Source: Macrostomum lignano (taxonomy: Eukaryota). Taken from it: a stretch of 64,000 nt of DNA. Position numbers and translations under genes: made by a program. Under the pieces are notes generated by a model, which worked only from the letters and a program-made list of their open reading frames with translations, was not told where the DNA came from and ran no database searches. This document shows positions 722-51,269 of this stretch, in pieces (position 1 is the stretch's first letter; every line of letters begins with the position of its first letter). Where the stretch lies: assembly GCA_002269645.1 (NCBI GenBank), contig NIVC01000152.1, forward strand, positions 901,176-965,175. The letters run 5' to 3'.

Positions 722-1650
722 TGCTCAACATGCAAGTATTAAAGATTTATTAGTAAGTGTGGTAAACACCAATGAAATTAATATTATGCCATGGTCTATT
801 GACTATATAAATGAAATGGGAAAAAGTTAATTAATGTACTAGGTACATAATATTGCTTATCAATTAAAGGTAAGCATTGCTAGCTCTATTTTAAATCAAA
901 GTAAAGTAACCCAAAGCATTATATATTATATTGTATATAAAAAACAAAAGATTATATATAGAGTCCCAATGAGCCTAGCTTTTTCAAGTCAAGGTCAAGT
1001 CAGTAGTGCAGCTAGGGGGGGGGGGTAGGGGCCTAGGGCTCTTCAAAATTCTAGAAAAAATTACTCCCCCCTGAAATTCTAGAAAACCCCCCTTTATACC
1101 TTTTGTTCCAAGTGCTAAATAGGTACCCACCCCTCAAAAATTTCTAGCAATGCCACTAGCTCAAGTTGAATAGTATGAATATCTGCCTAAATAAAATTAA
1201 AGGCACCTTACTTTTGAAAATTGTTCAAGTATTGTAACAGAAAAGTTACAAAACTTTTTGTACTTTATATTTAATATTTTTTATTGCATTTTGCCTATGA
1301 GGCACTGTGATGAGACCTGGTTTTACTTAAAATTTCTATGTCCAATATGTCATTTTAGCTTTTTTATTAATTATTTATTGATAAAAATATTTAACATAGA
1401 CATTATAGCCAAAACCTTTGCAACAATGCCTATGAAACTTCATCTTAGGCCTAAAGCATATAAGGACCTAAAAATCTTATTAATATTATTTCTAGGGCCT
1501 AGTATATTTCTCAAAACTATACTATATTTATCCTATAAATAGGGTCATAAATAAATCATATTATATATTATAAAGTTCTATTATAACCAAAGGGCCTATC
1601 AACTTAAGCTCAAAGTTGAGCCTAAGTAACATGTATACACAAATGATATG

Positions 1651-8168: not shown

Positions 8169-10169
8169 GACTGGTGATGTGACTGAGTTTACTAGTGATG
8201 TGACCGCATAGACTGGTGAGGTGACCATGTTGACTGGTGATGTGACCCTGTTGACTGGTGATGTAACCGTGGTTACTGGTGTTTTGACCAAGTTGACTTG
8301 TGATGTGACCGTATTGACTGGTGATGTGACCATATTGACTGGTGATGTGACCGTATTGACTGGTGATGTGACCGAGGTGACTGGTGATGTGACCACATTG
8401 AATGGTGATGTGACTGCATTGACTGGTGATGTATGTGACCACATTGACTGGTGATGTGACCGTATTGACTGTTGATGTGACAGAGGTTATTGGTGATGTG
8501 ACCACGTTGACTGGGTGATGTGACCATATTGACTGGTGATGTGACAACGTTGACTGGTGATGTGACCGGATTGACTGGTGATGTGACCATATTGACTGGT
8601 GATGTGACCACATTGAATGGCGATGTGACTGCATTGACTGGTGATGTATGTGACCACATTGACTGGTGATGTGACCGTATTGACTGTTGATGTGACAGAG
8701 GTTATTGGTGATGTGACCACGTTGACTGGGTGATGTGACCATATTGACTGGTGATGTGACCGAGGTGACTGGTGATGTGACAACGTTGACTGGTGATGTG
8801 ACCCGATTGACTGGTGATGTGACCACATTGACTGGTGGTATGACAATGTTGACTGGTGATGTGACAGATGTGACTGGTGATGTGACCATGTTGACTGGTG
8901 ATGTGACTGTATTGACTGGTGACGTGATTGAGGTGACTGGTGATGTAACTGCGGTGACTGGTGTTTTGACCACGTTGACTGTTGTGACCACGTTGACTGG
9001 TGGTGTGACCGGATTGACTGGTGATGTGACCGTATTGACTGGTGATGTGACCGAGGTGACTGGTGATGTGACCACATTGACTGGTAATGTGACCACATTG
9101 ACTGGTGATGTGACCGAGGTGACTGGTGATGTGACCACATTGACTGGTGATGTGACCGCGGTGACTGGTGATGTGACCACGTTGAATGGTGATGTGACTG
9201 CGTTGACTGGTGTTGTGACCACGTTGACTGGTGATGTGACCCCGACGACTGTTGATGTGACCGTATTGACTGGTGATGTGACCGAGTTGACTAGTGATGT
9301 GACCACGTTTACTGGTGATGTGACCGTATTGACTGGTGATGTGACCGAGGTGACTGGTGATGTGACCACATTGAATGGTGATGTGACTGCATTGACTGGT
9401 GATGTATGTGACCACATTGACTGGTGATGTGACCGTATTGACTGTTGATGTGACAGAGGTTATTGGTGATGTGACCACGTTGACTGGGTGATGTGACCAT
9501 ATTGACTGGTGATGTGACCGAGGTGACTGGTGATGTGACAACGTTGACTGGTGATGTGACCGGATTGACTGGTGATGTGACCACATTGACTGGTGGTATG
9601 ACAATGTTGACTGGTGATGTGACAGATGTGACTGGTGATGTGACCACGTTGACTGGTGATGTGACCGTATTGACTGGTGACGTGACCGAGGTGACTGGTG
9701 ATGTGACTGCGGTGACTGGTGTTTTGACCACGTTGACTGTTGTTGTGACCACGTTGACTGGTGGTGTGACCGTATTGACTGGTGATGTGACCGGATTGAC
9801 TGGTGATGTGACCGGATTGACTGGTGATGTGACCGTATTGACTGGTGATGTGACCGAGGTGACTGGTGATGTGACCAAATTGACTGGTGATGTGACCACA
9901 TTGACTGGTGATGTGACCGAGGTGACTGGTGATGTGACCACATTGACTGGTGATGTGACCGCGGTGACTGGTGATGTGACCACGTTGACTGGTGATGTGA
10001 CCCCGACGACTGTTAATGTGACCACGTTGACTGGTGATGTGACCGAGTTGACTGGTGATGTGACCGAGTTGACTGGTGATGTGACCACGTTTACTGGTGA
10101 TGTGACCGTATTGACTGGTGATGTGACCGAGGTGACTGGTGATATGACCCGACGACTGGTGATGTGACC
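8169..10169. repeat. 21-bp minisatellite (consensus GTGACCACGTTGACTGGTGAT), ~95 units, with higher-order duplicated blocks
   Basis: Direct inspection. It accounts for all the TGDVTxL, SPVNxVT and HHQS ORFs in the track. Confidence 0.97.
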
Positions 10170-11676: not shown

Positions 11677-13125
11677 ATTAATATAACAATAGCTATTAAG
11701 TTGCTAATTAATTGTAAAAAGATAGTGGATATAATAGAGATTCAATGTTGTGTGGCCATCTTAGTCTTATACCCTTTTTTAATAGGGATCATATAATAAA
11801 AGAATACAATAAAGAAAATTATTTAACAAAAAGAGAGCAGTTCAAAATGTTTTTGAAAAAAGCTTGTACGAGCCTAAGCTCGTAGGGCCTAAGCAAATTA
11901 GCAGAATGATCACAATGCCTAATAGGCAAAGTGTATCATAAAGTATTGAAAATATAAATACAAACAGTTTTATATAATACAAGCTCATAATAAGTCCAAT
12001 ATATTAAATATTTACTTAGCAAGAGACAAGTGCACTACTATTAGTAACATAATAATTTAGCAACTACGCCTGTCAGTCCAAAATGATTTACTATAGTATA
12101 AGAAATTGTGTTGTCTTATTATGAATGTGTATACTAATGATTGACTTTGATTTATCAGTGTGCTATGGTTTTCAAATGCTAAATTGATTGATCTATGTCT
12201 AAGGCTGCCACATGCTTATAGAAAAGACTAGAACTTACATGTTTAAATATGAGTCACATTTCTTAGAAATGGAAACCAATTAAACAAAATACCTATTATT
12301 AGAACCTTATAATAAACTACACATAATTATTATAGCTAAGGATCTTGACTAAAGTTAGAATAAATAAACTAGATTCAAATTACAGAATAGTTACAATACC
12401 TTTTTTATTACATGACAAATTTTTAAGACTAAGGTATCTTTTTAGGCAAGTGAGATTCATCAAATAAAATAAAAATACCAAAATAGCTTTTAAAATCCCA
12501 AATTTAAGCCAGGCCTAATAATTTTTTTACTAGAGGCCAATGCTTAGTCACTAGTAGCAAGTTGATTTGCTAAAAATCAATTTGCTGAAAGTAGGTTTTT
12601 TTGTTGAAAGTTTTATCTTGACTTCTAACTCATCTTATATATAAATATGATGGACCTTATATAATGGTATATTCAGTATTGTAAAATAGAAAATTAAATA
12701 AATAAATGAACAAGGTCCAGCTATGACAGGTTGACATCTAGCACTAGCTGCATTGTCCATAGAATGTTTATAGTCCAGCAGCGGCATCTGCTTGATATTG
12801 CCTTTGCAGTTGGCTATGAGTATGTCAATTATGCAATAATATGTCTACTATAAAAGCCGCAACATATTGGCTAAGGCAATGATAGTGTGTTGTGCTTGTC
12901 ATCATCATGATCATGTTAATAGAAGCCTTTTGGCAGATGGTGATGCTCTAGTCAAATGAGTTTTGCAAATTTTCCAAAAAGAAAGTAAAAAAGTAATTAA
13001 AAAATTGTTGCTTTTGTAGTAATAGTAATAGATAATATACTAATAAAGTATTTTTAGTCAACCATTATAATCTTCTGTCTTCTTTTTATGGTTCTTTCTA
13101 CCCACAATCATTGGGCTTTAATTTA

Positions 13126-16100
13126 ATGACTATGAAGAAATCAAATAAATTTCCTGAGAAAAATACTGAAGAAGAGGAAATGCTGCTGCAAAATTATGCA
13201 TTGTTAAAGAAATTGGTAAGTTAAATGGATTGTTTCTTTGGCCTAAAATTGTCTTTCCTTAAGCTGAGCTTCTATTCTAGCAGATCTCCAAGTTAAGACC
13301 CTACTCTACCACATCTCCAGGTTGAGACCCTACTCCACCACATCTCCAGGTTGAGACCCTACTCTACCACATCTCCAGGTTGAGACCCTACTCTACCATA
13401 TCTCCAAGTTGAGACCCTACTCTACCACATCTCCAAGTTGAGACCCTACTCTACCACATCTCCAAGTTGAGACCCTACTCTACCATATCTCCAAGTTGAG
13501 ACCTTACTCTACCACATCTCCAAGTTGAGACCCTACTCTACCACATCTCCAGGTTGAGACCCTACTCTACCACATCTCCAAGTTGAGACCCTACTCTACC
13601 ATATCTCCAAGTTGAGACCTTACTCTACCACATCTCCAAGTTGAGACCCTACTCTACCATATCTCCAAGTTGAGACCCTACTCTACCACATCTCCAAGTT
13701 GAGACCCTACTCTACCACATCTCCAAGTTGAGACCCTACTCTACCATATCTCCAAGTTGAGACCTTACTCTACCAAATCTCCAAGTTGAGACCCTACTCT
13801 ACCACATCTCCAGGTTGAGACCCTACTCTACCACATCTCCAAGTTGAGACCCTACTTTACCATATCTCCAAGTTGAGACCTTACTCTACCAGTCTACCAG
13901 ATCTCCAAGTAAGGACCCTACTTTACCAGATCTCCAAGTTGAGACCCTACTCTACCATATCTCCAAGTTGAGACCATACTCTACCCGATCTCCAAGTAAG
14001 GACCCTACTCTACTATCTGCTCTGCTTTAGGATCAATTCACCGGGTCAAGGTTAACCTTAGATCTACAAAATTATATATTTTAACTGTGCCTGTCAATCG
14101 CCGCAGAGAAAACAGCTGACTGAGCTGCGCAGCCGGCAAGCGGCCGAGGCCGAGACAAATCGCGAGAAGGAGGAAACGCCGGTTAAGCCTAACGAAGATG
14201 CCAGGGTGGCGGCTGAGCGCCTGGTGAAACTGGGCAAAATTAAAATACAAAGCGCCTGCCCGCCTCGGGTATTGATGAAGAAAGGCCGCGATTCGACTGG
14301 CCCAGTCTCCGCTTATCGGCCCTACTCGCCTACTGGCGGCGGCTCTGACGAGATTCAACAGCATCAGAATCAGCTGCAGCAGCCGCCAGCCAAGCGGCCG
14401 CGCTCGAATCTCTACGACAGCTTCGTTTCTGGCGGCGTACAGGATCCGGCGCCAGCTACCCCGTCAGGGAACAGCGCCGAGCCCAATAAGCCCCGTGGCA
14501 ACACTCTATTCGTGCAGGGCTACAATATCCATCCAGATATGCTCCGGTCGGCGTTCAGCCCGTTCGGCCCGATCTCGCGCATCGCTATGGAGAATCGCGC
14601 TGGCGGCCTCGCCGGCCGGTTTGGCGACTCCAAAGCCAACAACAAGCCGAAGGCGTTTGTCACGTTCGAATCGGAAGACGACGCCGCTAACGCTATGGAT
14701 CAGGTGTGCTACTTAATATTTTTATTAATTAGCTGGTAGATAGATAGATAAAAAGACGCTATAGAGTCAAAAACCTTAGCGCTCACACGCTCGCGAAAAA
14801 GCTCAGAAAGGCAGGAAGTGGGCTCAAGTGTGGTGAGGTAGATGGCTTGAAGGTCACTAGCAAAGTTCTTTAGAAGCGTCTCAGTGCGCGCATGTCCGCG
14901 ACGGTATGGGTCGCATAGACATGCATGCGCAACCTCCAAAATTCGGTCGGCCATGCGACTTAGTTTTAACAAAAATGCGACGTAGTTTTTGGCCAAAAAT
15001 GCGACTTACATGTAAAAAAACCTAAAGCAAAATTAATGCAACATTGGGTAAACAGCAGGAGTAACTATGACTGTCTTATTAAGCCAAAATGCCTCGTCAG
15101 CTACTTAGTACTACTACTGGGTAATTTTTTGGGTGGGTATTTTTGCGACTTCCTTGGTTGGCCACCAAATCGGCCAACTCGGCCGACTGTTGCGCATGTA
15201 TGCGCATAGCGGATTGAGCACGACAACCGCAAGGGGGTTCATTTCCCCTCGAACGTAGCTGCGTAGCACATTGCCGCGAAGTCGCCGCGCTCTCAGGAGG
15301 GAGCTCACTGGTGGGACGCCGGAGCGAGCAGCGAGCGCACGGTTTGACAGCCTTTCAGGGTAGCGGAGATCGAGAGCAAACCGCAGCAAAGCTCTGAAGG
15401 TGGCGTCGAGAGCCTGGTTGCGAGATTCCGTGACCGGCAGAGCTTCGAGACCGTAAAGGAATATCGGCAGCACGACAGCACAGAAAATCCGGATTTTAAG
15501 TTGGTCAAATTAGCTGATAGTAGTTGTTAATAGTCATAGTGTTTGGTAATATTTATTTAAGTTCTTAATGTTGGATTTTTATGCAAAAACGGTCGCGAAG
15601 TTTTTACAATTGTTTTTTTATTGATTCTGTTAATTTTTGCACTGTTAAGCACAGATCAAAACATAAAATTTCACTTAACTTCGAATTGGAATTGGAATTG
15701 GAACTCTGTTGACTAAGCAGTTTACGTATTGTATTTGCGTTGTTTGTTTTTGCTGAAACATTTGCTTAATATTATCTGCTTTCTACTGTAAGTAGGTGGA
15801 ATCGCTTATTAGCGACTTAGTAATTAAAAATTAGTTTCGTGCCTTATGGCTGGGGTGGCCTAGGGGGTAGCGGGTGGCGCGGCCGGCGGTCCAGGGGCAA
15901 AGAGGGGTTGGTAAGAGTTCGGAGGCGGGGCGGGCCGCTCTAGTCTACGCGAGGCCTCACACATTCCTTATTTGGTAAGCGGCCGGCGCCGAGAAAATTC
16001 TATTTATGGTCAAAACTAAACCTGAGAGACTTAGAAGTATTGAATAGTTTGGGCTATGCTACCAACTATGGCTTAGTCGGTACGGGCGGCAAGATTATGA

Positions 16101-18789
16101 CGCAGAAATTTTATCTGGTCCCGGCCGTTTATAGAAGTTTCACTAGCTGCCGGACCCCTCGCATCCTTCACTTGCTAACTTTTACCCCTCTGTAGAGTTT
16201 AGCGGTTATTCGTTTCTGTTTATGTGCTTTTATCGCTTAGTAAATTTTTATTAACCGGAAAAAACGGATGCAACTGTCAAGTTTGCCTGCAATTCTATTA
16301 ATTTCTGGTGTTTCTACACTAATAGAAAAAGTCTATGTTTTTTATCTGAATTTGGTTTTGGTTACCCTGACGATGAATTTTGCCTGTCACCTGAATAGAC
16401 GGCAGCTTAGAGGGGGCGCCAGCTACAGAAGGGGCTCCAGCTACAGAAAAGGGCGCCAGCAATAGAGGCGCCATCAACATAGTCAGGCGCTGCTAGCAAA
16501 AGAGGCGCCGGCTACAGAAGGGGCTCCAGCTACAGAAAAGGGCGTCAGCAATTGAGGCGCCATCAACATAGTCAGGCGCTGCTAGCAAAAGAGGCGCCGG
16601 CTACAGAAGGGGCTCCAGCTACAGAAAAGGGCGTCAGCAATAGAGGCGCCATCAACATAGTCAGGCGCTGCTAGCAAAAGAGGCGCCGGCTACAGAAGGG
16701 GCTCCAGCTACAGAAAAGGGCGTCAGCAATAGAGGCGCCATCAACATAGTCAGGCGCTGCTAGCAAAAGAGGCGCCGGCTACAGAAGGGGCTCCAGCTAC
16801 AGAAAAGGGCGTCAGCAATAGAGGCGCCATCAACATAGTCAGGCGCTGCTAGCAAAAGAGGCGCCGGCTACAGAAGGGGCTCCAGCTACAGAAAAGGGCG
16901 TCAGCAATAGAGGCGCCATCAACATAGTCAGGCGCTGCTAGCAAAAGAGGCGCCGGCTACAGAAGGGGCTCCAGCTACAGAAAAGGGCGTCAGCAATAGA
17001 GGCGCCATCAACATAGTCAGGCGCTGCTAGCAAAAGAGGCGCCGGCTACAGAAGGGGCTCCAGCTACAGAAAAGGGCGTCAGCAATAGAGGCGCCATCAA
17101 CATAGTCAGGCGCTGCTAGCAAAAGAGGCGCCGGCTACAGAAGGGGCTCCAGCTACAGAAAAGGGCGTCAGCAATAGAGGCGCCATCAACATAGTCAGGC
17201 GCTGCTAGCAAAAGAGGCGCCGGCTACAGAAGGGGGCGCGAGCTAAGGGGTGTCAGCTACATAAGGCAGACTAGACAGGGTCCTAGTAAGTACTGGAGGC
17301 TGGCTGCAACGAACTGCTTTTCAGTGAGTTCATCATGGCTCATAACTAAGCTTGCCGTCAACCCTTGTCAAAAATACACAGTTTGGTAAAATCTTACAAG
17401 TACCAGTTTACTCGTAGTGTTTCGTGTGCACATGCGCGCACAAGCAGGTGAGACAGATACTGGGTACTTTGCTTTCCCCCTGTCCCTGTGTTCTCATTTT
17501 TTCACCTACTCGTAGCTGGCACTCGCATGGAGCTTTGAAAGATTTTATCGTCTCTTTTTTTATTTCAATCAGTGCGCGATCGCCAGTTTCATGCAGTTCA
17601 AGTCGCCTTTCTTATCAGATTGCCTTGCCAGCTAATTTGTAGAAGGCTAAGTTGGGTGGCTAGATAAATAGTCGAGGGAAAGGTGAGGGTAGGGGGAGGG
17701 CTGGTCATGGCCTGTCTGAACAGGTGATTCTAGCACGCGACTGCAGTTTTTGGCGCGCAGTATTAAGAAAATGTGCTAAGATACAAATTCTAAATGAGAG
17801 AGTTGGACTTGGCTAGACTTTGTATCTGAGGTTTGGGCATTTATGTAGCTTAGCTATCTTACAATTTTGTTACAAAGCTTGTTTAGTCAACACTGCAGCT
17901 CCATAAAGTTGTTATTTAGCAGTGGTACAGAAATTGCTACTGCATAACCTTGTTGTGCGTATGTGTATGATGGAGTTTCTTTGGCTAGCGATTACCATGC
18001 CGTTAAAATATTTTTAAAACTCGTGATTATCCATAATTATCGCAACTTCACTCCAACCAACTCGAGAAATACCGTCATCAGCTACTTCCCTCACTCAACT
18101 CAGAGTACCTCAGTCAACTCAAAGAGTCCCTCAGTAATCTCGAAGAGTCCCTCAGTCAACTCGATGAGTCCCTCACTCATCTCAGATAGTCCCTCACTCA
18201 TCTCAGAGAGTCCCTCACTCAACTCAGTCCCTCATTCTATACCGGTGTTTATTATATTCGATTTCGCTAGGCTCCTATGCTGCGGCGTAACTCAACTTTC
18301 CAACACCTCCCTCCCAATTATCATCAGCTGGATGGCCAGCTGGTCAAAGGCAGCGTTCTGAGCGTTCGCCTGGCAAGGAAGCAGCCGTCAGCTGGCGGTC
18401 AGGGATTCCGCGGCTACGGAGGCCGCCCGATGCCTCCTCAGCTGCCTGGCATCTCCGACTGGACGTCGGACTCGGGCGGCGGCGGCGGCGGCGGCAGGTA
18501 CCGACTCGGTCTTGGCTTTGCCAGCCCGGACGCTCCAGACGCCGCTGGCGCTAGTAGTCCGCGCTACGCGCCACCGGACACTCCGACTAGTGCTGGCGGC
18601 GCTGAACTAGGAGAAGCGTCAAATCTGACTCCCGGCGCCAGGTCGACAGAGGGGCCGTCATCAATTGGCGAAGATTCCGACAGCCTGCGAGATCAGCAGC
18701 GGCGACCACTACAATACTCGGACGGAGTGTTCGTGTCCTCGGATCCGATGGAGGAGGACGCAGTTGTGGAACTGGATGAGGTCATGTGA
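13126..18789 (+). CDS. NELFE: Negative elongation factor E (exons 13126-13215, 14107-14703, 18328-18789)
   Basis: N-terminus FPEKNTEEEEMLLQNYALLKKL, then AAERLVKLGKIK, and an RRM GNTLFVQG..LRSAFSPFGPI..KAFVTFE..AMDQ|LDGQLVKGSVLSVRLARKQP match NELF-E motifs (EEEE..LKK, QLVKSGAI, GAFSPFGNI, NIARKQP). Both introns are GT-AG, phase 0. Confidence 0.93.
13285..14013. repeat. 29-bp minisatellite (CTCCAAGTTGAGACCCTACTCTACCACAT), ~25 units, in NELFE intron 1
   Basis: Direct inspection. Confidence 0.97.
14760..15510 (-). mobile_element. 5'-truncated RTE-clade LINE remnant, interrupted by a MITE
   Basis: KIRIFCAVVLPIFLYGLEAL..LDATFRALLRFAL..LSNRALAARSG..LLRARRL resembles the post-RT C-terminus of RTE elements. 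The frame continues as CDPYRRGHARTETLLKNFASDL once the MITE is removed. Confidence 0.75.
14920..15202. mobile_element. hAT-like MITE, 283 bp
   Basis: TIRs CATGCATGCGCAAC and GTTGCGCATGTATG; 8-bp TSD CGCATAGA/CGCATAGC (14912-14919, 15203-15210). Confidence 0.8.
16409..17238. repeat. 89-bp tandem repeat (~9 near-identical copies) built from degenerate 18-bp GGGGCGCCAGCTACAGAG subunits
   Basis: Period of 89 measured at 16465, 16554 and 16643. The subunit is the reverse complement of the 63558-64000 satellite. Confidence 0.95.
18085..18235. repeat. Degenerate 21-bp repeat (CTCAGTCAACTCGAAGAGTCC)
   Basis: About 7 diverged units near the 3' end of NELFE intron 2. Confidence 0.8.
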
Positions 18790-20503
18790 CAATGTTATGT
18801 ACTGGAGCTTGAATTTCGACGAAAGGCAGCATCTTTCGTCGCTATAAATATTTCAATCTTGTATTTGTTTTCTTTTCAAACCGAAATAAACATAAATTCT
18901 TGTACATTTTCAGTTGGAACTTTGAATTATCACTTTGAAATGCTCGTTTTGTAAATATTTTTTTTTTCATTTTTAACTCTAAAGTGAAATTCAATAAGCA
19001 GATCGTTTTGTTGAGAACTTCAGTAGATAATTAGAGGCTATAACCAGCTATACCAGTAGTTCAGGCGAACTTGCAAATTAACCATTTGGATATTCAGTGA
19101 AGTGGGGGGGGGGGGGTAAAGCTCCCTCCGGTTTAGCCTTTGGCTCTGCCTCAGACCGAAATGCGCATACCAAATTGACTGCCTAATCACGTACGCAACT
19201 GCGTGTCAGAAGCTGCTTGGCCTCTCTCTCTCTCTGTTTCTCTCGCTTTACTATTATAGTTCAGCTCGGTGTAGTGTAGGTAGCTCAGAATGTATGAAGA
19301 TTTAACGCTGGCGTCTGTCCCTCTCTCTTAGTAGAGTGCTTTGTATTTTGGCCTACTGCATGCTTACTGCCGTGCCGTGGGTTGCTAAATTTTAGTAGAA
19401 TGGGGCTCAGAGTCTCAGAGTTACAACTTGGCCAGCCATATACGAGCGTAGAAGTTTTCGTCCCGCTCGTTTTACAGGCAAGCTAGCTAGTTGTTAATAG
19501 TTTGTCTCTTAACTTCGCCTGATTCGAGTTCGCTGTTAATGCGCTAGCTATTGCACCGGATTTAGCATAGTGTTGCAGCCGATGTGCATGAATTACAATT
19601 ACTTTTGCTTTGTACATTGTAGGCGCTGTCCTAAATAAAGCAATTATTACTCGTAGATAAAAAACGATTGCAAAATGAGATTTCAAAGGCGATATCGACA
19701 TGTTTATTATTATTTTATTTTGTGGCAAAGGCATTCCTCACAGCACGCGGACACAGTTTACTGGATGCTCTCGTGTATTTAGTTCAGTTTATATTCATCC
19801 TTTCAATTGTTTACTACTGACTGGTGGATAAAAACCGACAGAAAAACTATTTTGCTAAATATAAACTGGGAAACAAATAAACGAAAAAACCGGATTAGAC
19901 AGTTAAATATAGGTGGGAAGAATATTTTAATTTGCATTTGCATTTGTTTATTTAACTTCAGAAAGAGAACAGAATAATGAGAAGCAAAGGAAAACCGATG
20001 CGTTTAACATTGTCAAATAGGAAGGCTGCTTCGCTATAACAATAGCAGACACAACAGACAGACTAACCGACTCCCACTAACTATTAGCTACGGCGGGGAT
20101 GTAAAGAGACAACACAACAAAGAATTTAATGTAGCACAGGAAATGTGACGGGCTTCTTGGAAAAGTTAATTATTGACAGAGCTGTCAAAAAGCTCTACGG
20201 AATACACAGAGAGACTGGGAGTTGCATCAAAGACTGCCACATGCCAAGCTTGATGGAATCATGTTTTTTCAATTATATTTCTGCTGTCTTGATTATAACA
20301 AAATGAAAACTTAAGTAACTCAGTCCAATAGTCAAGGCCTACATATTACTTAATAATATATTTAAAGACAGTTATAAAGATAGGCATAGGGTTTTTTAAT
20401 AATGCGGGCGGTCGAGTGCAAATGAACTGGTTGTCAAAAAAATATTCATTATTAATAATAGAAAAACTGATGATGAATAACCACCGGCTGACAGGCTGCT
20501 CGC

Positions 20504-21531
20504 TCAGTTGGCGCCACGGTCGCCCTGGCGGCAGAGCTCCAGCATGCACTCCTCCGAAGCCTCATCGATGCCGCTAGCCTGCAGCTCCTTGAAGATGCCC
20601 TGCAGTTTGTTCTTCAACTCAACCTTGGACGAGGCGATCAGCATCTTCTGTCTGATTGGGATGCCGTCGGGACCCCTGGACACAGTGGAAATCAATTAAT
20701 GCATTGTATTTTTAGATTCTAGAAGAAAGATCCCAATTATTGGGTTGAAGCGGGTTAGACTTCGGTCGAGAGTTTTCCCTCACTAGAAATCTCAGATCAT
20801 TGTGGATCCCACCAACTGATGCCTATCAATGGGGATCCCACCAACTGATGCCTATCAATGGGGATCCCACCAACTGATGCCTATCATTGGGGAATCCCAA
20901 CAACTGATGCCTATCATTGGGAATCCTAACAACTGATGCCTATCATTGGGAATCCCAACAACTGATGCCTATCATTGGGGAATCCTAACAACTGATGCCT
21001 ATTATTGGGAATCCCAACAACTGATGCCTATCATTGGGAATCCTAACAACTGATGCCTATTATTGGGGAATCCCAACAACTGATACTTATTATTAGGGAA
21101 TCTCAACAACTGATGCCTATCATTGGGGATCCCACCAACTGATGCCTATCATTAGGAATCCCAACAACTGATGCCTATTATTGGGGAATCCCAACAACTG
21201 ATGCCTATCATTGGGGATCCCATCAACACACAGTTAAAAAGGCAAAACAACTAACCAAGACACAAAAAACGAGCCGGCTGCGCTTTTGCTTGGACTCTTC
21301 AAATTCGAAGACCAAGTCATAAACGGCATAGCAGCCAACTTTCCTGTTCACCGAGTCCTTCAGATCTTCTATGAATTCATTGTAGGTGGCGTCAGCTGGG
21401 GCCTTTTTCAAAACGCCAATCTCCTTGTCATTATTGACAAAGCCAAACAGCAGATACCTGTAGCAGTGGTTGGTCTTGATCTCCTGGAAGGTGTCAAGCA
21501 CCTCCTGCTGAACTTTCACTCCGGAAGCCAT
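20504..21531 (-). CDS. cofilin: ADF/cofilin (exons 21531-21256 and 20675-20504; one extra base in T6 run 21264-21269; possible upstream ATG-only exon 21806-21804)
   Basis: MASGVKV..YRYLLF..YAVYDL..RLVF(VS)W|GPDGIPIRQKMLIASSK..LKNKLQGI..ELQA is the ADF-H pattern. The phase-2 intron lies in the Trp codon. Exon sum is 448 nt, one base too long. Confidence 0.93.
20801..21222. repeat. 29-30-bp minisatellite (TGGGGATCCCAACAACTGATGCCTATCAT) in the cofilin intron
   Basis: Direct inspection, ~14 units. Confidence 0.95.
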
Positions 21532-21545
21532 GCAATAAATTGGGT
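21529..21545 (-). promoter_or_regulatory. Spliced-leader-like sequence ACCCAATTTATTGCATG at the cofilin start
   Basis: 14/14 (16/17) match to the 3' end of the Macrostomum lignano SL as I recall it (..AGACTCAATTTATTGCATG). Branch-point-like CTAAC lies immediately upstream. Confidence 0.65.
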
Positions 21546-24500
21546 TAGAAATAAGTTAACAAAATCTTACTCAAACTGCTTCATATGCAACAAATACCTT
21601 GTAGTTTTTGAAAAATTATTTTTCATTTTTCTAAATTAAATATAGTAAAACAAAGCAATTCATTCAATTAAATGCTTGAAATTTATACTAAGAATTTTAT
21701 TTGGTTGATTTAAACAAAAAATAAACACTAGAACAAAAGAACTAATCATTTAATCAAATCCACTAAAATATGAGCCTAAACTTATTAATGGCATAACTTT
21801 TACCATATTGACAAGTTTTTATCCAAATAAACATTCAACATTTTAATTGCAACCTGAAAATTAGATCAAAAAGACGATTTTTAGTATATAGATGTGGAAC
21901 TAAACTAAAAATTTAAGTCTTATGTCTCTAATAATATTATTATCAAGTCTTTTATTACATAAAAATTGAATAGATAATAAGTTTAATACAAACATTAATA
22001 TTATATATATATATACTAACTTTGTCATAGTTTTAATTGAAATTCTAAAAAATGCAACCTAGTTTTTCAACACATTGATCCCTAATCCTTTTTGTGACTT
22101 CCTAATCTTTTTGCAACCTAGTCTGCTTTTTTTGTTTATTCTTTTTAATTTGTGCTATTTACCTGTTTTTGTTTTGCTTTTTTGTAGTACCTTTTTAATT
22201 TTTCTTTATCTTTCTATGCTAGTCTTCTTTTACACTTTTGATTATCAATTTTATAACTTAACCTTATAGTTTATATCAGCCAAATCAGCTGGGTTGGCTA
22301 GTAGTGCAATTGCAAAAACAGTTATAGATGCCTTATATGGAATGTTTTAAATCGATAACAGTCTAATTTAAGTAAAAATGGCTTGACAAGACTTAATGTT
22401 TATAGCAAAAAAAGGATAGGCCATTGCCAAAATTTTATTCTTATATACACTTGCTACCTTAAATATGGCATACACTTTTTTATTATGTATACCTCTATAT
22501 TACTTTTGTTTCTATTATTTATTCTATTAAGCCTATTTTAATATTTGCTACCTTGGGTTTAGCAGTTAATGTGGATAAAGTTTTCATTAAACAAATTTGA
22601 TTGCAAAGGATGAAGGTTTGAATGGTTTGAAGGATTGAATGGTCCAAAGGCAAAATGCCTATAGAAAAACAGTTAGAGGTCAATAGTAGGTCTATTTATA
22701 TAGTCATTTTGTCTCTTATCAAGTTAACTGCTAGTTGACAAACTTAATATTTATTAATTAGTACTTAAAAGATTGATTAATATATGCATAATTGTTTACA
22801 TAAAAAACTATTTTAAAATAGGGCTTGGCTTAGGCCTAGTTTTCTTATACTTAGTGAAACATCATTTGAAGAGCCAATGTTATGCCTTTTTCAATTTTAA
22901 TTGTGATTTCTCAATATATTTTGTTTGTACCTATCAAAGTCTTTCTTTCTCTTACAAAATGACAATAGACAAAACAATCTACACCTATAGGTTTAAATAC
23001 TAACCAATTTGGCAATAGAGATTTACATTGGACACATTTGGCAAAAAAGTAAATTCAGCAACAATCTTGTTGAATTGAGTAGTAATAAAGGAAACAATGG
23101 TATATCTTATTATTTAGTATAATCATATCAATCAATATGTATTAACTTTGCTTTCTACCCAAGTTTGTTTCATCTATTTTTTACCATAAACTTTCTAAAT
23201 ATACTTTTTAAGAAATGTTTATTCATTCTTATAGCCAATATAACTTATAGCCAAAGAAAATAAATTGTAAACTACAAAATTTTATAATTCTAAAGTTAGT
23301 TTTAGAGATATATACAGAGACATATATAACTTTTAAGGCATTTTAATTTGAATTTAAATTAAATAATATCATTTTTATTTTTTAGCTGACATGCACTTAA
23401 TCAAAACTTTTTGGCATACATAGTTATTGGTATACGTTTGTAATTGTTCAATTTTTGTTTGGCCATACACTTTGCATAATTTAGAATATGGTGGTTATTG
23501 ATTCAAGGCCATAGTTTAGAATGACATATATGCCAGGATTTCCCAGTATACAATAAAGGTACTTACTATTTTTCAGCATATAGCAAGCATATCCCAATGT
23601 ACATAACATAGTAGATACATTGTGTCAATGGCAATTTTTTTGCATTGGCATACAACCTTGCATACAAATGAGGTCTTGTAATTTTTCCGATATTAAACCT
23701 GGTATATACTAATATATAATCTAAACTATAGATTCAAGGTAGGCCTAAACATTGTAGAAAATATAGGCCCCCTTATTAGATTATAATTAAAAAATTTTAT
23801 AACTTCTTTAAGTTTAATACATACAAAAATGAAACATTTTTTTAATTTAAAATATTTTTTGCCTTTAATATATCTTTTAAAATTTATTATCACTACACTA
23901 ACAATAGGGGCCTAAATAAAAATTATTTTTTTTTACTAAATTTCAGCTTATATAAGCGCTAGTGCTTAATTAAAACAAAAGGTAACAAGTCAATTTGACA
24001 AAAGTTGATTTGCCAAAAGTCAATTTTTTAAAAGCAGGTTGTTTCACCAAAAGTTGTTTTGCCAAAAAATGACCAAATAAATAAATAAAATAAAATAAAT
24101 AAAGAAATAAAATTGTAAATGTTAGATTTAAAACATGTATTTTGTAAATTGACTTTTTCTAAAAGTTTTTTTGGCAAATCATCAAGTATTCATTTAAAAT
24201 GATTACATTTTGGTTTAAAAGTAAAATTCTTTCCTAATGCAGAGTGCATAGGCCTATGCACATTTATTAGTCCAAAAAGTGTTTTTGCACAGTTGATATG
24301 ATCAACCTAGGCCTAGGCCTTTATCTTCATAAAAAATTGCAACTTTTAGACCTAGTCTAGACTCTAGCCTATCATTTAAATCTAAAGGCATTGGACACGA
24401 ATAGAATATAAAGTGTAACAGTAGGCCTAGCCTAGTAAACTGCAGAGGTTAAAAAAATCATTAACAATTAAAAAGCAAACCAAGTTATTTCGTCGTTAAG

Positions 24501-27986: not shown

Positions 27987-29195
27987 TAGGGGTCGGATGT
28001 GATCACGATTGTGATCACAATTTTGTGAATTCACGACCATTTTTTTCACGATTGTTATTTCCTTGAAACCCATTCACGACCGCTTCCGGACATTTGCCCT
28101 CCGGCACTTCCCCTCCGGCACTTGCCCTCCGGCACTTCCCCTCGGCGGCGTTTGCCCTCCGGACATTTGCCCTCCGGGACATTTCCCCTCCGGACATTTG
28201 CCCTCCGGACATTTCCCCTCGGGGACATTTGCCCTCGGGGACATTTGCCCTCCGGACATTTGCCCTCCGGCACTTCCCCTCCGGCACTTGCCCTCCGGCA
28301 CTTCCCCTCGGCGGCGTTTGCCCTCCGGACATTTGCCCTCCGGGACATTTCCCCTCCGGACATTTGCCCTCCGGACATTTCCCCTCGGGGACATTTGCCC
28401 TCGGGGACATTTGCCCTCCGGACATTTGCCCTCCGGACATTTGCCCTCTGGACATTTCCCCTCCGCACATTTGCCCTCTGCAAATTTACCCCCTCGCACA
28501 TTACTCACCTCACCTCCTCCTGTACCCACCCGTCGTTCCTCCAGCACCAACCTCATCCTCCCGCCTCTTGCATCCATCAGGTTCTTCTCCAGCCAACAAC
28601 TCATCCTTTTCTAGTAAGCAATATATACCCGCGCCCTACCCTATCCCCAGCCTTACCTGTAATTTTCCAGAGGGGAAATGTCCGGAGGGCAAATGTCCGG
28701 AGGGGAAATGTCCCCAAGGGCAAATGTCCCCGAGGGCAAATGTCCGGAGGGCAAATGTCCCCGAGGGCAAATGTCCTCGAGGGCAAATGTCCTCAAGGGC
28801 AAATGTCCGGAGGGGAAATGCCGGAGGGCAAATGTCCGGAGGGCAAATGCCGGAGGGCAAATGTCCGGTAGCCATTTACGACAGTCGTGAATTTCCGCTT
28901 TATTACATTTTTATTAGAAGTATAACTTTTCTAGTTGGTTTACCAAAATATATGAACACACATGTGTAAAAGAGTAATAAATTTTAATTTTGTTGACTTG
29001 ACAGCATTACTGAGTACTATTATCAATTTATAAATATTTCTTTTCTTGTTTTGTTATTTTCAACACTTGTAACTTACGAGCTCAAAATATGTGTATGCAA
29101 ATATAAATTCACAATCACAATCACGATCACGCCCGACTTTAAAAATTTTACGAAATTTCATGCCCGACCAAATTTTTCTGCTCATCCGACCTCTA
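27987..29195. mobile_element. hAT non-autonomous element, 1209 bp, with CACGAT subterminal repeats and a foldback insert
   Basis: TIRs TAGGGGTCGGATG and CATCCGACCTCTA; exact 8-bp TSD CTTCTTAG (27979-27986, 29196-29203). Confidence 0.9.
28072..28893. mobile_element. Foldback-type element with modular 15-bp arms (GGACATTTGCCCTCC)n ... (GGAGGGCAAATGTCC)n
   Basis: The 28085-28490 array is inverted relative to 28670-28870, around a ~180-bp spacer; ends are TTCACGAC and GTCGTGAA. Confidence 0.8.
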
Positions 29196-30893: not shown

Positions 30894-31451
30894 ATGGGCC
30901 GGTACAGCGTTAAGCCAGAGAGCGCCGCAAAATGCGCCAAGGCGCGCGGCTCTTACTTGCGCGTGCACTTTAAAAATACCCGCGAAACCGCCGGCGCTGT
31001 GCGCGGCATGGCGCTAAAACGGGCGCAGCGATTTTTAAAGAACGTCATCTCCAAGAAGGAGATTGTCCCCTTCAGGCGGTTCATGGGCGGCACTGGCCGG
31101 CACGCGCAGTCCAAGGTCTGGGGCACAGCCACCGGTCGTTGGCCGAAAAAGTCCTGCGAATTTCTTCTACAATTGTTGAAGAATTGCGAAAGCAACGCCG
31201 AGTTTAAAGGCCTCGACGCCGATCATTTGGTTATTGATCACATCCAGGTCAACCGGGCGCCCAAAATGCGTCGCAGGACCTACCGAGCCCACGGCCGCAT
31301 CGGGCCCTACATGTCCTCGCCATGCCACGTTGAGGTCATCTTGAACGAGAAGGAGCAGGTGGTCGCCCGCGCCGCCGACACAGAGGAGACGTCCGCGAAG
31401 AAGAAAGAAAGCAAGAAGAAGCTGAAGAAGGCTAAGCTGCGCGGCGAATGA
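30894..31451 (+). CDS. RPL17: 60S ribosomal protein L17 (uL22), intronless CDS
   Basis: Intact 185-aa ORF with [25 protein letters not shown] and [32 protein letters not shown]. Confidence 0.98.
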
Positions 31452-33473: not shown

Positions 33474-39092
<5,619 letters not shown>

Positions 39093-39804: not shown

Positions 39805-41065
39805 CGGTCACATCAACACACTGGCTAGCCTGTGCTCAGCGGTACGGTCACATCAACACACTGGCTAGCCTGTGCTCAGCGGTACGGTCACATCAACACA
39901 CTGGCTAGCCTGTGCTCAGCGATGCGGTCACATCAACACACTGGCTAGCTTGTGCTCAGCGGTGCGGTCACATCAACACACTGGCTAGCCTGTGCTCAGC
40001 GGAGCGGTCACATCAACACACTGGCTAGCCTGTGCTCAGCGGAGCGGTCACATCAACACACTGGCTAGCCTGTGCTCAGCGGTGCGGTCACATCAACACA
40101 CTGGCTAGCCTGTGCTCAGCGGTGCGGTCACATCAACACACTGGCTAGCCTGTGCTCAGCGGAGCGGTCACATCAACACACTGGCTAGCCTGTGCTCAGC
40201 GGTGCGGTCACATCAACACACTGCATGGCTAGCCTGTGCTCAGCGGTGCGGTCACATCAACACACTGGCTAGCCTGTGCTCAGCGGAGCGGTCACATCAA
40301 CACACTGGCTAGCCTGTGCTCAGCGGAGCGGTCACATCAACACACTGGCTAGCCTGTGCTCAGCGGAGCGGTCACATCAACACACTGCATGGCTAGCCTG
40401 TGCTCAGCGGTGCGGTCACATCAACACACTGCATGGCTAGCCTGTGCTCAGCGGTGCGGTCACATCAACACACTGGCTAGCCTGTGCTCAGCGGTGCGGT
40501 CACATCAACACACTGCATGGCTAGCCTGTGCTCAGCGGTGCGGTCACATCAACACACTGCATGGCTAGCCTGTGCTCAGCGGTGCGGTCACATCAACACA
40601 CTGGCTAGCCTGTGCTCAGCGGTGCGGTCACATCAACACACTGGCTAGCCTGTGCTCAGCGGTGCGGTCACATCAAAACACTGGCTAGCCTGTGCTCAGC
40701 GGTGCGGTCACATCAACACACTGCATGGCTAGCCTGTGCTCAGCGGTGCGGTCACATCAACACACTGGCTAGCCTGTGCTCAGCGGTGCGGTCACATCAA
40801 CACACTGCATGGCTAGCCTGTGCTCAGCGGAGCGGTCACATCAACACACTGCATGGCTAGCCTGTGCTCAGCGGTGCGGTCACATCAACACACTGCATGG
40901 CTAGCCTGTGCTCAGCGGTGCGGTCACATCAACACACTGGCTAGCCTGTGCTCAGCGGTGCGGTCACATCAACACACTGCATGGCTAGCCTGTGCTCAGC
41001 GGTGCGGTCACATCAACACACTGGCTAGCCTGTGCTCAGCGGTGCGGTCACATCAAAACACTGGC
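39805..41065. repeat. 40/44-bp minisatellite (CGGTCACATCAACACACTG[CATG]GCTAGCCTGTGCTCAGCGGTG), ~30 units
   Basis: Two unit lengths differing by a CATG insertion are interspersed. Confidence 0.97.
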
Positions 41066-42156
41066 AAGCATGTAGGCAGCGGGTCGACTGTGTCCAATAG
41101 AATCACCCCCTGCACATCGGCAATAGAAGAGGCTCTATAATAGCTATAGATCTGACGCTAGTTCCTAAAGTCAATAATTTATCCAGGAACTGTAACTTGA
41201 TTCTCCTTTTTCTAACTTTGTGACAGGATCGATTGAAACGATTTTATAAAGCGGTCATTACTCCCTCTTACTATATTCTTCCGGGTAAGAACTTCAAAGT
41301 AAAATAAGTTATCAGTTCGTTATGATCAACAAGGAAAAATGAATTTTACTTATAATTTTTATTAAAATGTCAGCAAATTTTTCAGGTTTGGTCAATTGCA
41401 GACAAGAGCGCTCTCACCACATACTTTTTAATATAAACATATAACATATAAACACTGAATTGAAAATCAGAAGATTGAAATGATAAGTTTTATGATCAGT
41501 TTGTTCACACTGCTAATGACCTAACCGTCACTCTAATGTCAGAAATCACTGCGGCAATCAGTGACCTACGAAAAGCCTCCACAAATACAAGTTTTATGAT
41601 AAGTGAGGAACAAGGACAACTAGAAAGGGGGATGGGAAACGCCTCAGATTATACAGAAAAAGCTTGAAGGCCTATTCATTTCTATTGTGTCAATTATAGC
41701 GTAATTATGTGTCTACGGCTGCAATCCCATGACCGGAATCCCATTAACAAGTCCTCTCCAAATCCACCAAAATCCTCTCTGTGAAACAGAAACCCGTCAA
41801 AATCCTCCCGTGAAACCGAAATCCATCAAAATCCTCTCCGTAACAAAATCCTCTCCGTGAAACAGAGACCCATCAAAATCCTAAAAGGGAAAGAACTCCC
41901 ATCTCCAGAATTTCATTCCCTGAAATCAATCAGGTGAATCCCATGACCCGAATCCCATCATCCAAATGCATCAGAATCCTCTCCGTGAGACAGAACTCCA
42001 TTGAATTCCTCTTCGTGAGGCTGAAATTCATCAAAATCCCTTTTGATAAACTAAAATGTATCAATATAATCTTCGTCAAGCTGCAAAAAATCAATATGAA
42101 CAATAATATCTCCATCAAATTGCAGAAAATCAAGACTGAACAGAAAGCCTGACTTA

Positions 42157-42569
42157 AAAGAAAGACATATAGATTTCAAAGAAAGACATCTAGATTTCAA
42201 AGAAAGACATCTAGATTTCAAAGAAAGACATCTAGATTTCAAAGAAAGACATCTAGATTTCAATGAAAGACATCTAGATTTCAAAGAAAGACATCTAGAT
42301 TTCAAAGAAAGACATCTAGATTTCAAAGAAAGACATCTAGATTTCAATGAAAGACATCTAGATTTCAAAGAAAGACATCTAGATTTCAAAGAAAGACATC
42401 TAGATTTCAAAGAAAGACATCTAGATTTCAATGAAAGACATCTAGATTTCAAAGATAGACATCTAGATTTCAAAGAAAGACATCTAGATTTCAAAGACAG
42501 ACATCTATATTTCAAAGAAAGACATCTATAGATTTCAAAGAAAGACATCTAGATTTCAAAGACAGACAT
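42157..42569. repeat. 21-bp minisatellite (AGATTTCAAAGAAAGACATCT)
   Basis: Direct inspection; it explains the SLKSRCL ORF. Confidence 0.97.
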
Positions 42570-45191: not shown

Positions 45192-48100
45192 ATGGCTGAC
45201 CCATCATATGCTTGCACACAATGCTGCAATAGAACTTGCTACAAATGGTGTCTAGTAGAGAGACACAGGCTGCCAGATGACCCTAGCACAGCCCAGAGAC
45301 TGCGCCACGACCTGCTGTGCCCGCCACATGGTCGCACGGGCAGACTCTTAGCTGGCCTAGCTGCTGTGTTGCTCCTGTATGCCGCACTCTGGTCTTTGTT
45401 TCCCGAACTGTCTGTGCCTGGCACCTGCGTAACTGTGCAACTGCCAGACTCTACTAACAGTAGCAACTCGACAATATCATCAGCAAATCAAACTGACTCG
45501 ATCAGGCCATCTACTAATAAGCAGAAGTGCACTGGCGGCCTGTTCGGCCTCTACCTGGTGTTTACGCTGTCAATGCTAACAGGCGAACTGTTTGGCCTGA
45601 TTCCCCGCTGTCCAAAACTGCTGGGCATGCTGCTGGCCGGCTGTTTCCTGCGCAGCGTCCCGTTCCTGTCCGATTTCGCTCTGGCCATCGACAAGACTCT
45701 GTCGTCAACTCTGCGCAGCGTGGCTCTGTGCATCATCCTGCTGCGAGCCGGCCTGGGCCTCGACCCGAAGCGACTCCGCGCCCTGTCGCTGCACGTCGGC
45801 CTGTTGGCATTCGCGCCCTGCCTAACCGAAGCTGTCACTATTGGGATCGTGTCTCACCTGCTGCTCAAACTGCCGTGGGCTTGGGGATTCCTGTTAGGCT
45901 TCGTACTGGCAGCCGTGTCTCCAGCCGTTGTTGTGCCATCTATGCTGGCTATCAGTTCGGAGGGCTACGGAGTTGCTAAAGGAATTCCAACGCTGGTGAT
46001 TGCTGCCGCTAGCGTCGACGATGTGCTGGCAATCACCGGATTCGGCGTCCTGCTCAGCATCGTGTTTGGCAGCGGCGAGAGCCTCGCCCTGACCATCGCC
46101 CGCGGACCGCTCGAAGCCCTACTAGGCGTTGTTGTTGGCATCGTCCTGGGCCTGCTGCTTTGGTTCCTGCCGCCGGCCGGTCATCGCCGCTTCGTGTTCT
46201 ATCGATTCTGCTTTCTGGTGGCCTGCGGCCTCGCACCCCTGCTTGGCTCCGTTGTGCTCAAACTGCCCGGCGCCGGCGCTCTGGCCTGCCTGACTGCCGC
46301 TTTTGTGGCCGCCATCGGCTGGCGATCTCGCGACGGTTGGACTGACGATAAAAACCCGCTGCTAGCACCGGTGCGTTGCAAAAATACCCTTGAAGGACCT
46401 TAGGCTGGTTGCTGCGTCGCTTCGATGTGACTCCGCACCGCTACCTGATCCTCCCAGGTCATTTGATGGGACTCCGCACCGCTACCTGATCCTCCCAGAT
46501 CATTTGATGTGACTCCGCACCGCTACCTGATCCTCCCAGATCATTTGATGGGACTCCGCACCGCTACCTGATCCTCCCAGGTCATTTGATGGGACTCCGC
46601 ACCGCTACCTGATCCTCCCAGGTCATTTGATGGGACTCCGCACCGCTACCTGATCCTCCCAGGTCATTTGATGTGACTCCGCACCGCTACCTGATCCTCC
46701 CAGATCATTTGATGTGACTCCGCACCGCTACCTGATCCTCCCAGATCATTTGATGGGACTCCGCACCGCTACCTGATCCTCCCAGGTCATTTGATGGGAC
46801 TCCGCACCGCTACCTGATCCTCCCAGGTCATTTGATGGGACTCCGCACCGCTACCTGATCCTCCCAGGTCATTTGATGGGACTCCGCACCGCTACCTGAT
46901 CCTCCCAGGTCATTTGATGGGACTCCGCTACCCCTCTTTGAGCTTTTCCTCTCCAGAAACAATCACTGTGCACTTTAATTCTTGTCACTAGGTGGACGTC
47001 TGCTGGTGGATCGCCCAGCCAATGTTATTCGGTCTGATCGGCGTCGAAGTTGACGTTGGCAGCCTGCAGGCAGACGCAATCGGGCTCAGCTTGGCCGCTC
47101 TGGGCATCGGGCTGCTGCTCCGCATGGTTGCCTCGTTTATCGCGGTGACCGGGGCCGGTTTCACCGTGCGCGAGCGATTCTTCATCCCATTCGCCTGGTT
47201 GCCCAAAGCCACGGTGCAGGCTGCTATTGGGCCTGCCGTGTTGGATACCGCCTACAGGTGCGTATGGAGCTGGTCGAGGGCAGGAGGCGACACAAACGCC
47301 AAGGGAGGGTTGATTTTTTTATTAGAAGCAGGGGGGCTGTGTGCATCCTAGCGCACTTTAAAGCGACATTGTCACACAACCGGCGAGAGGCATTGCTGCC
47401 CATTCTGCCGACTCCCCTGAGCAGGCACACAAGCGCGCAGATACGTACGCAGTCATACGCACAGGCACACACTCACACAGGAGTGCACAGCGGCCCTGAC
47501 TTTATTTATCGTTAGGCATGCACACTTCACTGTGCCTTGGGGGTTGGCCCTTAAGGCCGTTAATTGCACGAGCAGAGCCAGGCCGAGATTCCAATTTAGC
47601 CCCAAAATGAATGTGACTGCACTTGGAATCGAGTCTGGGCCGCTGGCTGGAACATAAGAGCGCTGCGCCCAACAAAGACCCGGGGAGGGTTAGTACAATA
47701 GCATCCAACAAAGACCGGGAGAGGATTAGCAGCGCCCAACAAAGACCAGGAGAGGGTTAGTAACGCCCGACAAAGACCGGAGAGGGTTAGTAGCGCCCAG
47801 CAAAGACCAGGAGAGGATTAGTAGCGCCCAACAAAGACCAGGAGAGGGTTAGTAGCGCCCAACAAAGACCAGGAGAGGGTTAGTAGCGCCCAACAAAGAC
47901 CAGGAGAGGGTTAGTAGCGCCCAACAAAGACCAGCAGGAGAGGGTTAGTAGCGCCCAACAAAGACCAGGAGAGGGTTAGTAGCGCCCAACAAAGACCAGG
48001 AGAGGGTTAGTAGCGCCCAACAAAAACCCGGAGAGGGTTAGTAACGCCCAACCAAACCAGTTAGATATTTGCTTTTACAGAACCGGCGCCGGGCCCGAGG

Positions 48101-48342
48101 CGCAGGCCATGGGCGCCCAGATACTAACGGTGTCTGTGCTAGCCATTGTTTTAACCGCGCCGCTTGGCGCACTGCTCATCTCCCTGCTGGCGCCTCGGCT
48201 GCTCAGCCGTCAGGTGCTGTCCGTTGAGGATGCCAACGATCCGGACGCGATTCCGATGGACGAGCGGCCGCACGAGGCTGAAGACGGTGGCAACTACTTG
48301 CCCGTTGATGGCGACGATTATGATAAAGGCGCTGCTGCTTGA
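45192..48342 (+). CDS. SLC9B2: Na+/H+ antiporter of the NHA/SLC9B family, 568 aa (exons 45192-46370, 46992-47257, 48081-48342)
   Basis: Motifs LLGMLLAG, LRSVALCIILLRAGLGLD, GFVLAAVSPAVVVP, GIPTLVIAAASVDDVLAI and AWLPKATVQAAIGP. Introns are GT-AG, phases 0 and 2, and the frame closes (1707 nt). Confidence 0.95.
46424..46927. repeat. 41-bp minisatellite (GACTCCGCACCGCTACCTGATCCTCCCAGGTCATTTGATGG), ~12 units, in SLC9B intron 1
   Basis: Direct inspection. Confidence 0.97.
47370..47666 (-). mobile_element. tRNA-derived SINE, family A, copy 2 (SLC9B intron 2)
   Basis: Colinear with 1-252 and carries an extra ~40-bp segment; B-box-like GACTCGATTCC on the minus strand. Confidence 0.75.
47665..48052. 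repeat. 31-bp minisatellite (GCGCCCAACAAAGACCAGGAGAGGGTTAGTA)
   Basis: Direct inspection; it abuts the SINE head and ends ~28 nt before the acceptor. Confidence 0.95.
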
Positions 48343-48470
48343 GTTGCACAATGCACATTAGTTATATCGGCAATGTGGGCACTAGTATTATTTTTAACCT
48401 TATAATATTTGGTTTGTAAAATTTGATAGTATTGGCTTATGATGTTTATTGATTGTAAAGTTTAGGTTTT

Positions 48471-51020: not shown

Positions 51021-51269
51021 GCCCTCGTCCTCTCCCCCATTTTTTCCTTCCTTCGCTCTCCACCTCTCTTCCTACTCATACGAGTATATCCCCCCTATCT
51101 TCTTTTACTCAACTCTCTCCTCTCATCCTGTACTTTTCAATCTATTCGTTTCTCCCCACTCTGTCTCCGCTAATCTCGCCTTATAATTTCATATTTTTGA
51201 ATAATCTCGTCATAAATTCAGTGATGTACATTTGTGTTGGTTCTGTATTGTTTGAGTCCAATTTAAAAC

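Follow-up and report, generated by a model that had tools for sequence, protein, structure and literature searches.

Spliced-leader bases over trans-splice acceptors of cofilin and two other genes in the Macrostomum lignano assembly Mlig_3_7: a probable RNA-seq polishing artefact

We analysed a stretch of 64,000 nucleotides (nt) from the flatworm Macrostomum lignano (assembly GCA_002269645.1, Mlig_3_7, NIVC01000152.1:901176-965175; hereafter the window), in which the start codon of a cofilin gene coincides with the 3' end of the species' spliced leader (SL) written into the assembled sequence. Overall, the observation is confirmed and the interpretation that had been attached to it is partly supported: the reading that we strongly favour is that of an assembly artefact marking a real, ordinary trans-splice site. 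SL bases lie over the acceptor of cofilin and also over those of NELF-E and of a small GTPase gene, and we consider it very likely that all of them were introduced by polishing with RNA-seq reads and are absent from the DNA of the animal. Record coordinates are obtained by adding 901175 to the window positions used here, and every base of the window agreed with NIVC01000152.1 over the 20.8 kb that were checked (window 10504-31329).

At the cofilin start the minus strand reads CAATTTATTGCATG, the last three bases of which are an ATG followed by GCTTCCGGA (with GCTTCCGGAGTG.. reading on downstream; all feature coordinates are collected in Table 1). This ATG opens a reading frame beginning MASGVKVQQEV..., which, spliced to the next exon, yields a cofilin/ADF protein of 148 amino acids (aa) (Pfam Cofilin_ADF, E=6.8e-27). 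The published M. lignano SL is CCGTAAAGACGGTCTCTTACTGCGAAGACTCAATTTATTGCATG (PMC5173321; a 35-nt form is given in PMC8629364) and ends ..TTGCATG. Its last 14 nt are identical to CAATTTATTGCATG, with 16/17 positions matching when the ungapped comparison is extended, and the SL end and 14/14 match given in the original prediction are hereby confirmed from both papers. We observe that a scan anchored on the SL 3' end, run over both strands of the window, yields a single exact run of 14, followed by runs of 7 at 5 sites (about 8 expected), and that no further SL sequence is present in the window when up to 3 mismatches are allowed. The chance expectation of the 14-mer in 128 kb is 5e-4. Although acceptor regions and the SL tail are both T-rich, a chance likeness between a pyrimidine-rich acceptor region and the SL is refuted by these figures and retains practically no probability; the match is real and not a coincidence. 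As the assembly is written, the nearest AG upstream of GCT lies 35 nt away, and since no AG is within reach, the assembled sequence could not act as an acceptor at the place where SL-containing reads map.

A protein search led to two NCBI M. lignano proteins, with locus tags BOX15_Mlig031117g1 and BOX15_Mlig031117g3 (hereafter g1 and g3), of which g3 is the window copy and g1 its duplicate on NIVC01001154.1 (loci L001 and L004). The two copies are 97-98% identical in non-coding DNA, and their exons are identical but for one base. Directly upstream of GCT, however, g1 reads CCCTATTTGCTGCATG where the window reads CCCAATTTATTGCATG, and comparing the paralogous loci, as had originally been proposed, shows that g1 carries only a shorter part of the SL tail, TGCATG. 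The copies differ at positions -13, -8 and -7, and the window has the SL base at all three. About seven other differences are spread over the 470 nt upstream, and the background divergence is 1.85%; at least three differences within 14 nt have a probability of 0.002, which falls to about 7e-5 when all three are required to go toward the SL base. The coding sequence (CDS) of g1 (PAA71588.1) is annotated as 5'-partial, with a first codon that is exactly the GCT of Ala2 (ASGVKV..), and this 5' boundary is the trans-splice boundary that the authors of the assembly mapped with SL-containing reads.

What the acceptor looked like before SL bases were written over it is indicated by a third protein model, UniRef100_A0A1I8J914 (152 aa, two M. 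lignano entries), which we found in the 90%-identity cluster of the g1 protein and which begins PICLQ/ASGVKV (here and below, a slash marks the junction). The A0A1I8 accession series is presumably a WormBase ParaSite import of ML2, the assembly that preceded Mlig_3_7. Since the model starts with PICLQ, its source DNA or unspliced RNA reads CCN ATH TGY (TTR/CTN) CAR/GCT, or ..CCTATTTGCTTGCAG/GCT, with no difference in length from g1 or g3. The implied sequence fits the native ..TTGCAG/GCT that had been predicted for this site, and it would represent a canonical acceptor of the [T/C]TNCAG type, which is the acceptor motif reported for M. lignano (PMC8629364). Compared with the SL without gaps, the model-implied sequence differs at -2, -3, -4, -5, -7, -8, -13 and -15 and from -18 on, and thus matches the SL at 9/17 positions. 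Changes to the SL base are found at -2 to -5 in g1 and at -2 to -5, -7, -8 and -13 in g3, with -15 native in both copies. The 14/14 match would accordingly break down into about seven chance identities in a T-rich tract and seven SL-directed substitutions.

The same overwriting is present at the acceptors of two other genes. For NELF-E we compared the window copy with one on the scaffold of cofilin g1 (L005) and one on NIVC01001476.1 (L006), and for the small GTPase the window copy with one other (L007). The NELF-E gene on the plus strand was rebuilt from exons at 13093-13215, 14107-14703 and 18328-18789; an exact look-up showed that the 393-aa product is PAA89396.1 (BOX15_Mlig000987g3), which is annotated 'partial', while a protein search with the exon peptides gave no match at E<=1e-3. 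Because its open reading frame (ORF) runs on upstream as far as 13036, the start of the annotated transcript must lie at 13091-13093. The boundary at this point, common to the three copies, reads tttttCAG/GT in L006, atttCTG/GT in L005 and tttttATG/GT in the window, so that 0, 1 and 2 SL bases, respectively, lie over the acceptor (positions 1998-2000 in L005 and L006). At the small GTPase, the window has ..tacTTGCATG/TTGAGCAATGGGC where L007 (at about 1876-1882) has ..tacTTTCCAG/TTGAGCAATGGGC; the differences at -5, -3 and -2 (window 733, 731 and 730) all show the SL base in the window, and two others occur in 224 nt.

Taking the five altered copies of the three genes together, 17/17 changed positions carry the SL base of the corresponding ungapped offset, with no insertion or deletion. 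The depths reached are 1, 2, 5 (with 3 bases changed), 5 and 14 nt, the effect fading away from the junction, and the changes are 10- to 100-fold denser than the background divergence given above. Overwriting was thus found at 3/3 trans-spliced genes of the window for which copies could be compared, and sister copies that keep the native AG are available for two of them (CAG in L006 and CCAG in L007).

With respect to how SL bases could have reached a genome sequence, Mlig_3_7 consists of Canu contigs polished by Pilon with Illumina DNA and RNA-seq reads, both of which were used (PMC5730564), and its PacBio reads are those of the earlier ML2 assembly (PMC5730564). Of the three readings offered by the original prediction, RNA-seq-assisted polishing therefore has a documented route, and it is further borne out by the same overwriting at two other acceptors. 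The native cofilin outron most likely ends ..CTAACCCTATTTGCTTGCAG, and the SL would be joined directly to codon 2 (GCU), with the 3'-terminal AUG of the SL as the start codon. Reads of the mature cofilin mRNA would then begin inside the SL, and an unclipped alignment would lay SL bases over the last bases of the outron. In a highly expressed gene the RNA reads would outvote the DNA reads, and Pilon would swap bases singly and at unchanged length, mostly beside the junction and less often farther off. The 9/17 native identity to the SL would allow longer overhangs to align, which may account for cofilin showing the deepest effect. Should this be correct, DNA reads are expected to run ..TGCTTGCAG/GCT at cofilin, ..TTTTTCAG/GT at NELF-E and ..TTTCCAG/TT at the GTPase. 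We infer three elements of this account, namely, that the SL was still on the RNA-seq reads at polishing, the exact behaviour of the aligner and the raw genomic CAG.

We favour an artefact because the changes are substitutions only, are anchored at the junction and fade away from it, are unequal between near-identical copies and remove an AG that is needed. Several points weigh against it. PMC5730564 is silent on SL trimming and on the alignment mode at the polishing step, although it reports STAR with --alignEndsType EndToEnd for other RNA-seq and transcript mapping. A frameshifting run of six T (T6) in the window's cofilin exon outlasted polishing, which is odd if RNA reads dominated the locus, so either T6 is real or RNA reads were not dominant everywhere. 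The cis-splice junctions of cofilin are also intact, and its native acceptor was inferred from a protein model and not read as DNA. Lastly, SL overwriting was not seen at the start of the window's RPL17, an intronless gene of 185 aa on the plus strand (30894-31451; Pfam Ribosomal_L22, E=1.5e-33) with its own ATG. The 5' flank of RPL17 is nearly identical in the duplicate copy, and the CCTTTCT just upstream resembles a 5'-terminal oligopyrimidine (TOP) start, which suggests that this gene is probably not trans-spliced.

That the cofilin 14-mer is instead a genuine SL relic, left when a reverse-transcribed trans-spliced mRNA recombined with the gene, so that the outron end and the beginning of exon 1 were exchanged and the downstream intron was kept, appears highly improbable to us, even though SL-tagged retrocopies are well documented in dinoflagellates (PMC6050394, PMC5585692) and a precedent exists in an 'SL RNA gene' of ML2 whose actual location is the 5' end of a protein-coding gene that is trans-spliced (PMC8629364). 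The near identity of the g1 and g3 exons would also suit such an event; the SL-derived 14-mer upstream of the coding region is present in Mlig_3_7 but is contradicted by the independent protein model. However, no more than 14 nt of the SL are involved, replaced base for base with neither a length change nor an insertion boundary, and the 580-nt intron at 21255-20676 is retained, with no processed structure. The unequal extents of SL sequence in g1 (6 nt) and g3 (14 nt) would require two events. Conversion tracts cannot explain the overwritings of 1, 2 and 3 bases at NELF-E and the GTPase, which reach no more than 5 nt from the junction and each of which would destroy an essential AG, and UniRef100_A0A1I8J914, an independent model, implies CAG. 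We also searched with a 40-aa concatenation of the three SL frames, which detects only a near-full SL inside a CDS, and no protein in a collection of 5.8 billion sequences shared three 5-residue words with it. The cDNA-derived origin listed in the original prediction is thus not upheld, given the kept intron, the lack of further SL sequence and the 1- to 3-base versions elsewhere.

Slightly less probable still is ordinary mutation, by insertion of a T or by substitutions in decaying duplicates of a recent polyploid, with a coincidental likeness to the SL. M. lignano is indeed a recent polyploid in which these genes exist in 2-3 copies, the window copy of cofilin has a frameshift, and 9/17 positions of the native tract agree with the SL by chance alone. 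Chance mutation nevertheless does not account for 17/17 changes to the SL base at the same offset in five copies of three genes, nor for their density relative to background divergence. The single T insertion that had been put forward as turning the acceptor into a start codon was rejected, since a sequence encoding PICLQ plus one T gives neither g1 nor g3; it would also leave unexplained the SL-directed changes at -7, -8 and -13 and those at the two other genes.

Polishing artefacts from non-genomic reads show the features observed here, with substitutions only, confined to the overhang of abundant reads and unequal between near-identical copies. We know of no published description of such an SL effect in Mlig_3_7, and no search for one was made. 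The underlying biology is familiar, in that the 3'-terminal AUG of a flatworm SL can be the initiator methionine (Cheng et al. 2006, J Biol Chem 281:733, as cited in PMC9851317). This is in line with an M. lignano SL that ends in AUG, with a cofilin junction exactly before codon 2 (GCT) and with a cofilin ORF that lacks a genomic start codon of its own (the g1 CDS being 5'-partial from Ala2). Judged from these sequences, trans-splicing of the SL onto codon 2 of cofilin, with initiation at the SL AUG, would be the arrangement already known from flatworms, and no new mechanism would be involved. The dinoflagellate SL relics and retrogenes (PMC6050394, PMC5585692, PMC12014239) likewise have SL-derived bases before the coding region in genome sequence. 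Unlike them, M. lignano cofilin has a 14-nt tail only, by one-for-one replacement and with the intron kept; the depth varies between copies, an independent model reads CAG, and depths of 1-5 nt are found elsewhere. The mis-assigned 'SL RNA gene' of ML2 (PMC8629364) resembles cofilin in that a trans-spliced protein-coding gene has SL sequence at its 5' end and differs from it in that the whole SL is involved. In both cases SL sequence stands next to coding sequence in an assembly of the same species. ML2 was presumably not polished with RNA.

As originally proposed, the site appears to be a splice acceptor located where the cofilin intron behind the ATG would end. In plant ADF genes the first exon consists of the ATG alone and is directly followed by an intron (PMC11374638), and in C. 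elegans the first exon of unc-60 is a shared one (PMC3469465). The cofilin trans-splice junction of M. lignano is located at the same phase-0 position right after the ATG, whereas its upstream partner is the SL RNA and not a cis exon, and by analogy it is reasonable to suggest that an old intron acceptor may now serve as the trans-splice acceptor. Both motifs described upstream, ATG/GTAAAAG and CTAAC, are present. The former does not hold up as the ATG-only cis exon for which it had been taken and was rejected as no better than chance: the window contains 0.77 ATGGT per kb on each strand, the p of meeting one within 275 nt is about 0.2, and such an exon is absent from the annotation. The donor at this point is weak and differs between copies, reading GTAAAA in the window and GTATAAG in g1, without the +5 G of the species consensus GT[G/A]AG (PMC8629364).

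These results indicate that Mlig_3_7 appears to hold SL-derived bases over the AG of trans-splice acceptors. Errors of this kind could introduce spurious start codons and upstream ATGs, conceal acceptors when motifs are surveyed, inflate apparent divergence between duplicated copies and mislead the design of promoter or 5' untranslated region (UTR) constructs and of guide RNAs. The [T/C]TNCAG motif was shown by only 9,551 of 21,754 trans-splice regions (PMC8629364), a figure to which overwriting might contribute. At the same time, overwriting marks trans-splice sites to the single base. There is a very small chance that the SL-tail bases are truly germline and that M. lignano recurrently writes short SL stretches over its trans-splice acceptors, for instance by micro-conversion from reverse-transcribed mRNAs in a polyploid genome that tolerates dead copies. 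In that event the SL relics of dinoflagellates would have a first counterpart in an animal, and the genes concerned would have kept their introns.

Table 1. Coordinates of the features at the cofilin start and at the NELF-E and small GTPase acceptors (window positions)
Feature	Position	Strand	Remarks
TTGCATG over TTTCCAG acceptor, Ras/Arf-superfamily small GTPase	729..735	-	7 nt upstream of start codon
ATG over CAG acceptor, NELF-E 5' boundary (BOX15_Mlig000987g3)	13088..13090	+	three copies compared
Cofilin last coding exon, through TGA stop	20504..20675	-	identical in g1
Cis intron GT..AG, phase 2, splitting Trp codon, 580 nt	20676..21255	-	retained
Cofilin/ADF coding exon, Ala2 to TG of split Trp codon	21256..21528	-	includes T6 at 21269-21264
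ATG in frame with cofilin codon 2 (GCT)	21529..21531	-	in the assembly, replaces acceptor CAG
SL-tail 14-mer CAATTTATTGCATG	21529..21542	-	last 14 nt of outron, covering the acceptor AG position; g1 reads CTATTTGCTGCATG
CTAAC, plausible branch point 16-20 nt upstream of junction	21544..21548	-	motif only; outside the overwriting, same in g1
ATG/GTAAAAG, proposed ATG-only exon	21797..21806	-	assessed, not counted as part of the feature

With regard to the remainder of the cofilin gene, the T6 run, which is T5 in g1, shifts the frame of the window copy, and this is why NCBI annotates just an 81-aa ORF (PAA89397.1) for g3. Two origins are conceivable for the run, a homopolymer error left over from the long reads or a genuine mutation that disables one of the duplicates. 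Of the earlier statement about the Trp-codon intron, the part that stands is that the intron is retained; the ATG-opened frame, on the other hand, does not enter it in frame, owing to T6. The 102-aa ORF of the window's exon 1 was found on no other contig in the collection, and the 148-aa MASGV.. protein was not found in the protein collection. Within the intron lies a minisatellite of 29 nt x 14.7 copies (20796-21227). The 3' UTR (window 20300-20470, minus strand) differs from that of L001 mainly in homopolymer lengths (T7/T8, A6/A7) and by one 5-nt indel, differences that may stem from uncorrected assembly errors and not from true divergence. We also looked at the cofilin 3' end for a poly(A) equivalent of the overwriting and saw nothing convincing, the differences being in homopolymer length only.

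We observe that the surroundings of the genes vary between copies. On the g1 scaffold, NELF-E is located >10 kb farther from cofilin than it is in the window (L004, beyond 12010). The third NELF-E copy is shortened (242 aa) and adjoins the small GTPase gene, with no cofilin nearby; no third cofilin copy beside it was found in L007, where synteny is broken. A further site in the window, at 62047-62053 on the plus strand, reads ctttaccTTGCATG/TGCC after a pyrimidine tract and may be a fourth case of overwriting. It precedes by 113 nt an ORF of 194 aa (62166-62750), which has six zinc knuckles of the CCHC type and is CNBP-like (Pfam zf-CCHC, E=1e-49).

The window is rich in minisatellite arrays, whose periods range over 4-89 nt and whose copy numbers reach 95. 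One of them, a 29-nt repeat of 25 copies in NELF-E intron 1 (13272-14013), is unrelated to the repeat in the cofilin intron. Others are found at 8169-10169, 16415-17235, 28085-28478, 36326-37633, 39805-41073, 42157-42569, 46424-46928, 47665-49148, 49897-51026, 52315-53759 and 63558-64000. The arrays give rise to strong GC/AT skews at 8-10 kb and 50-54 kb and to many spurious long ORFs on both strands. In addition, a 403-aa ORF on the plus strand (45192-46403) carries a Na+/H+ exchanger transmembrane domain (Pfam PF00999, E=4e-16) and is probably one exon of a larger gene.

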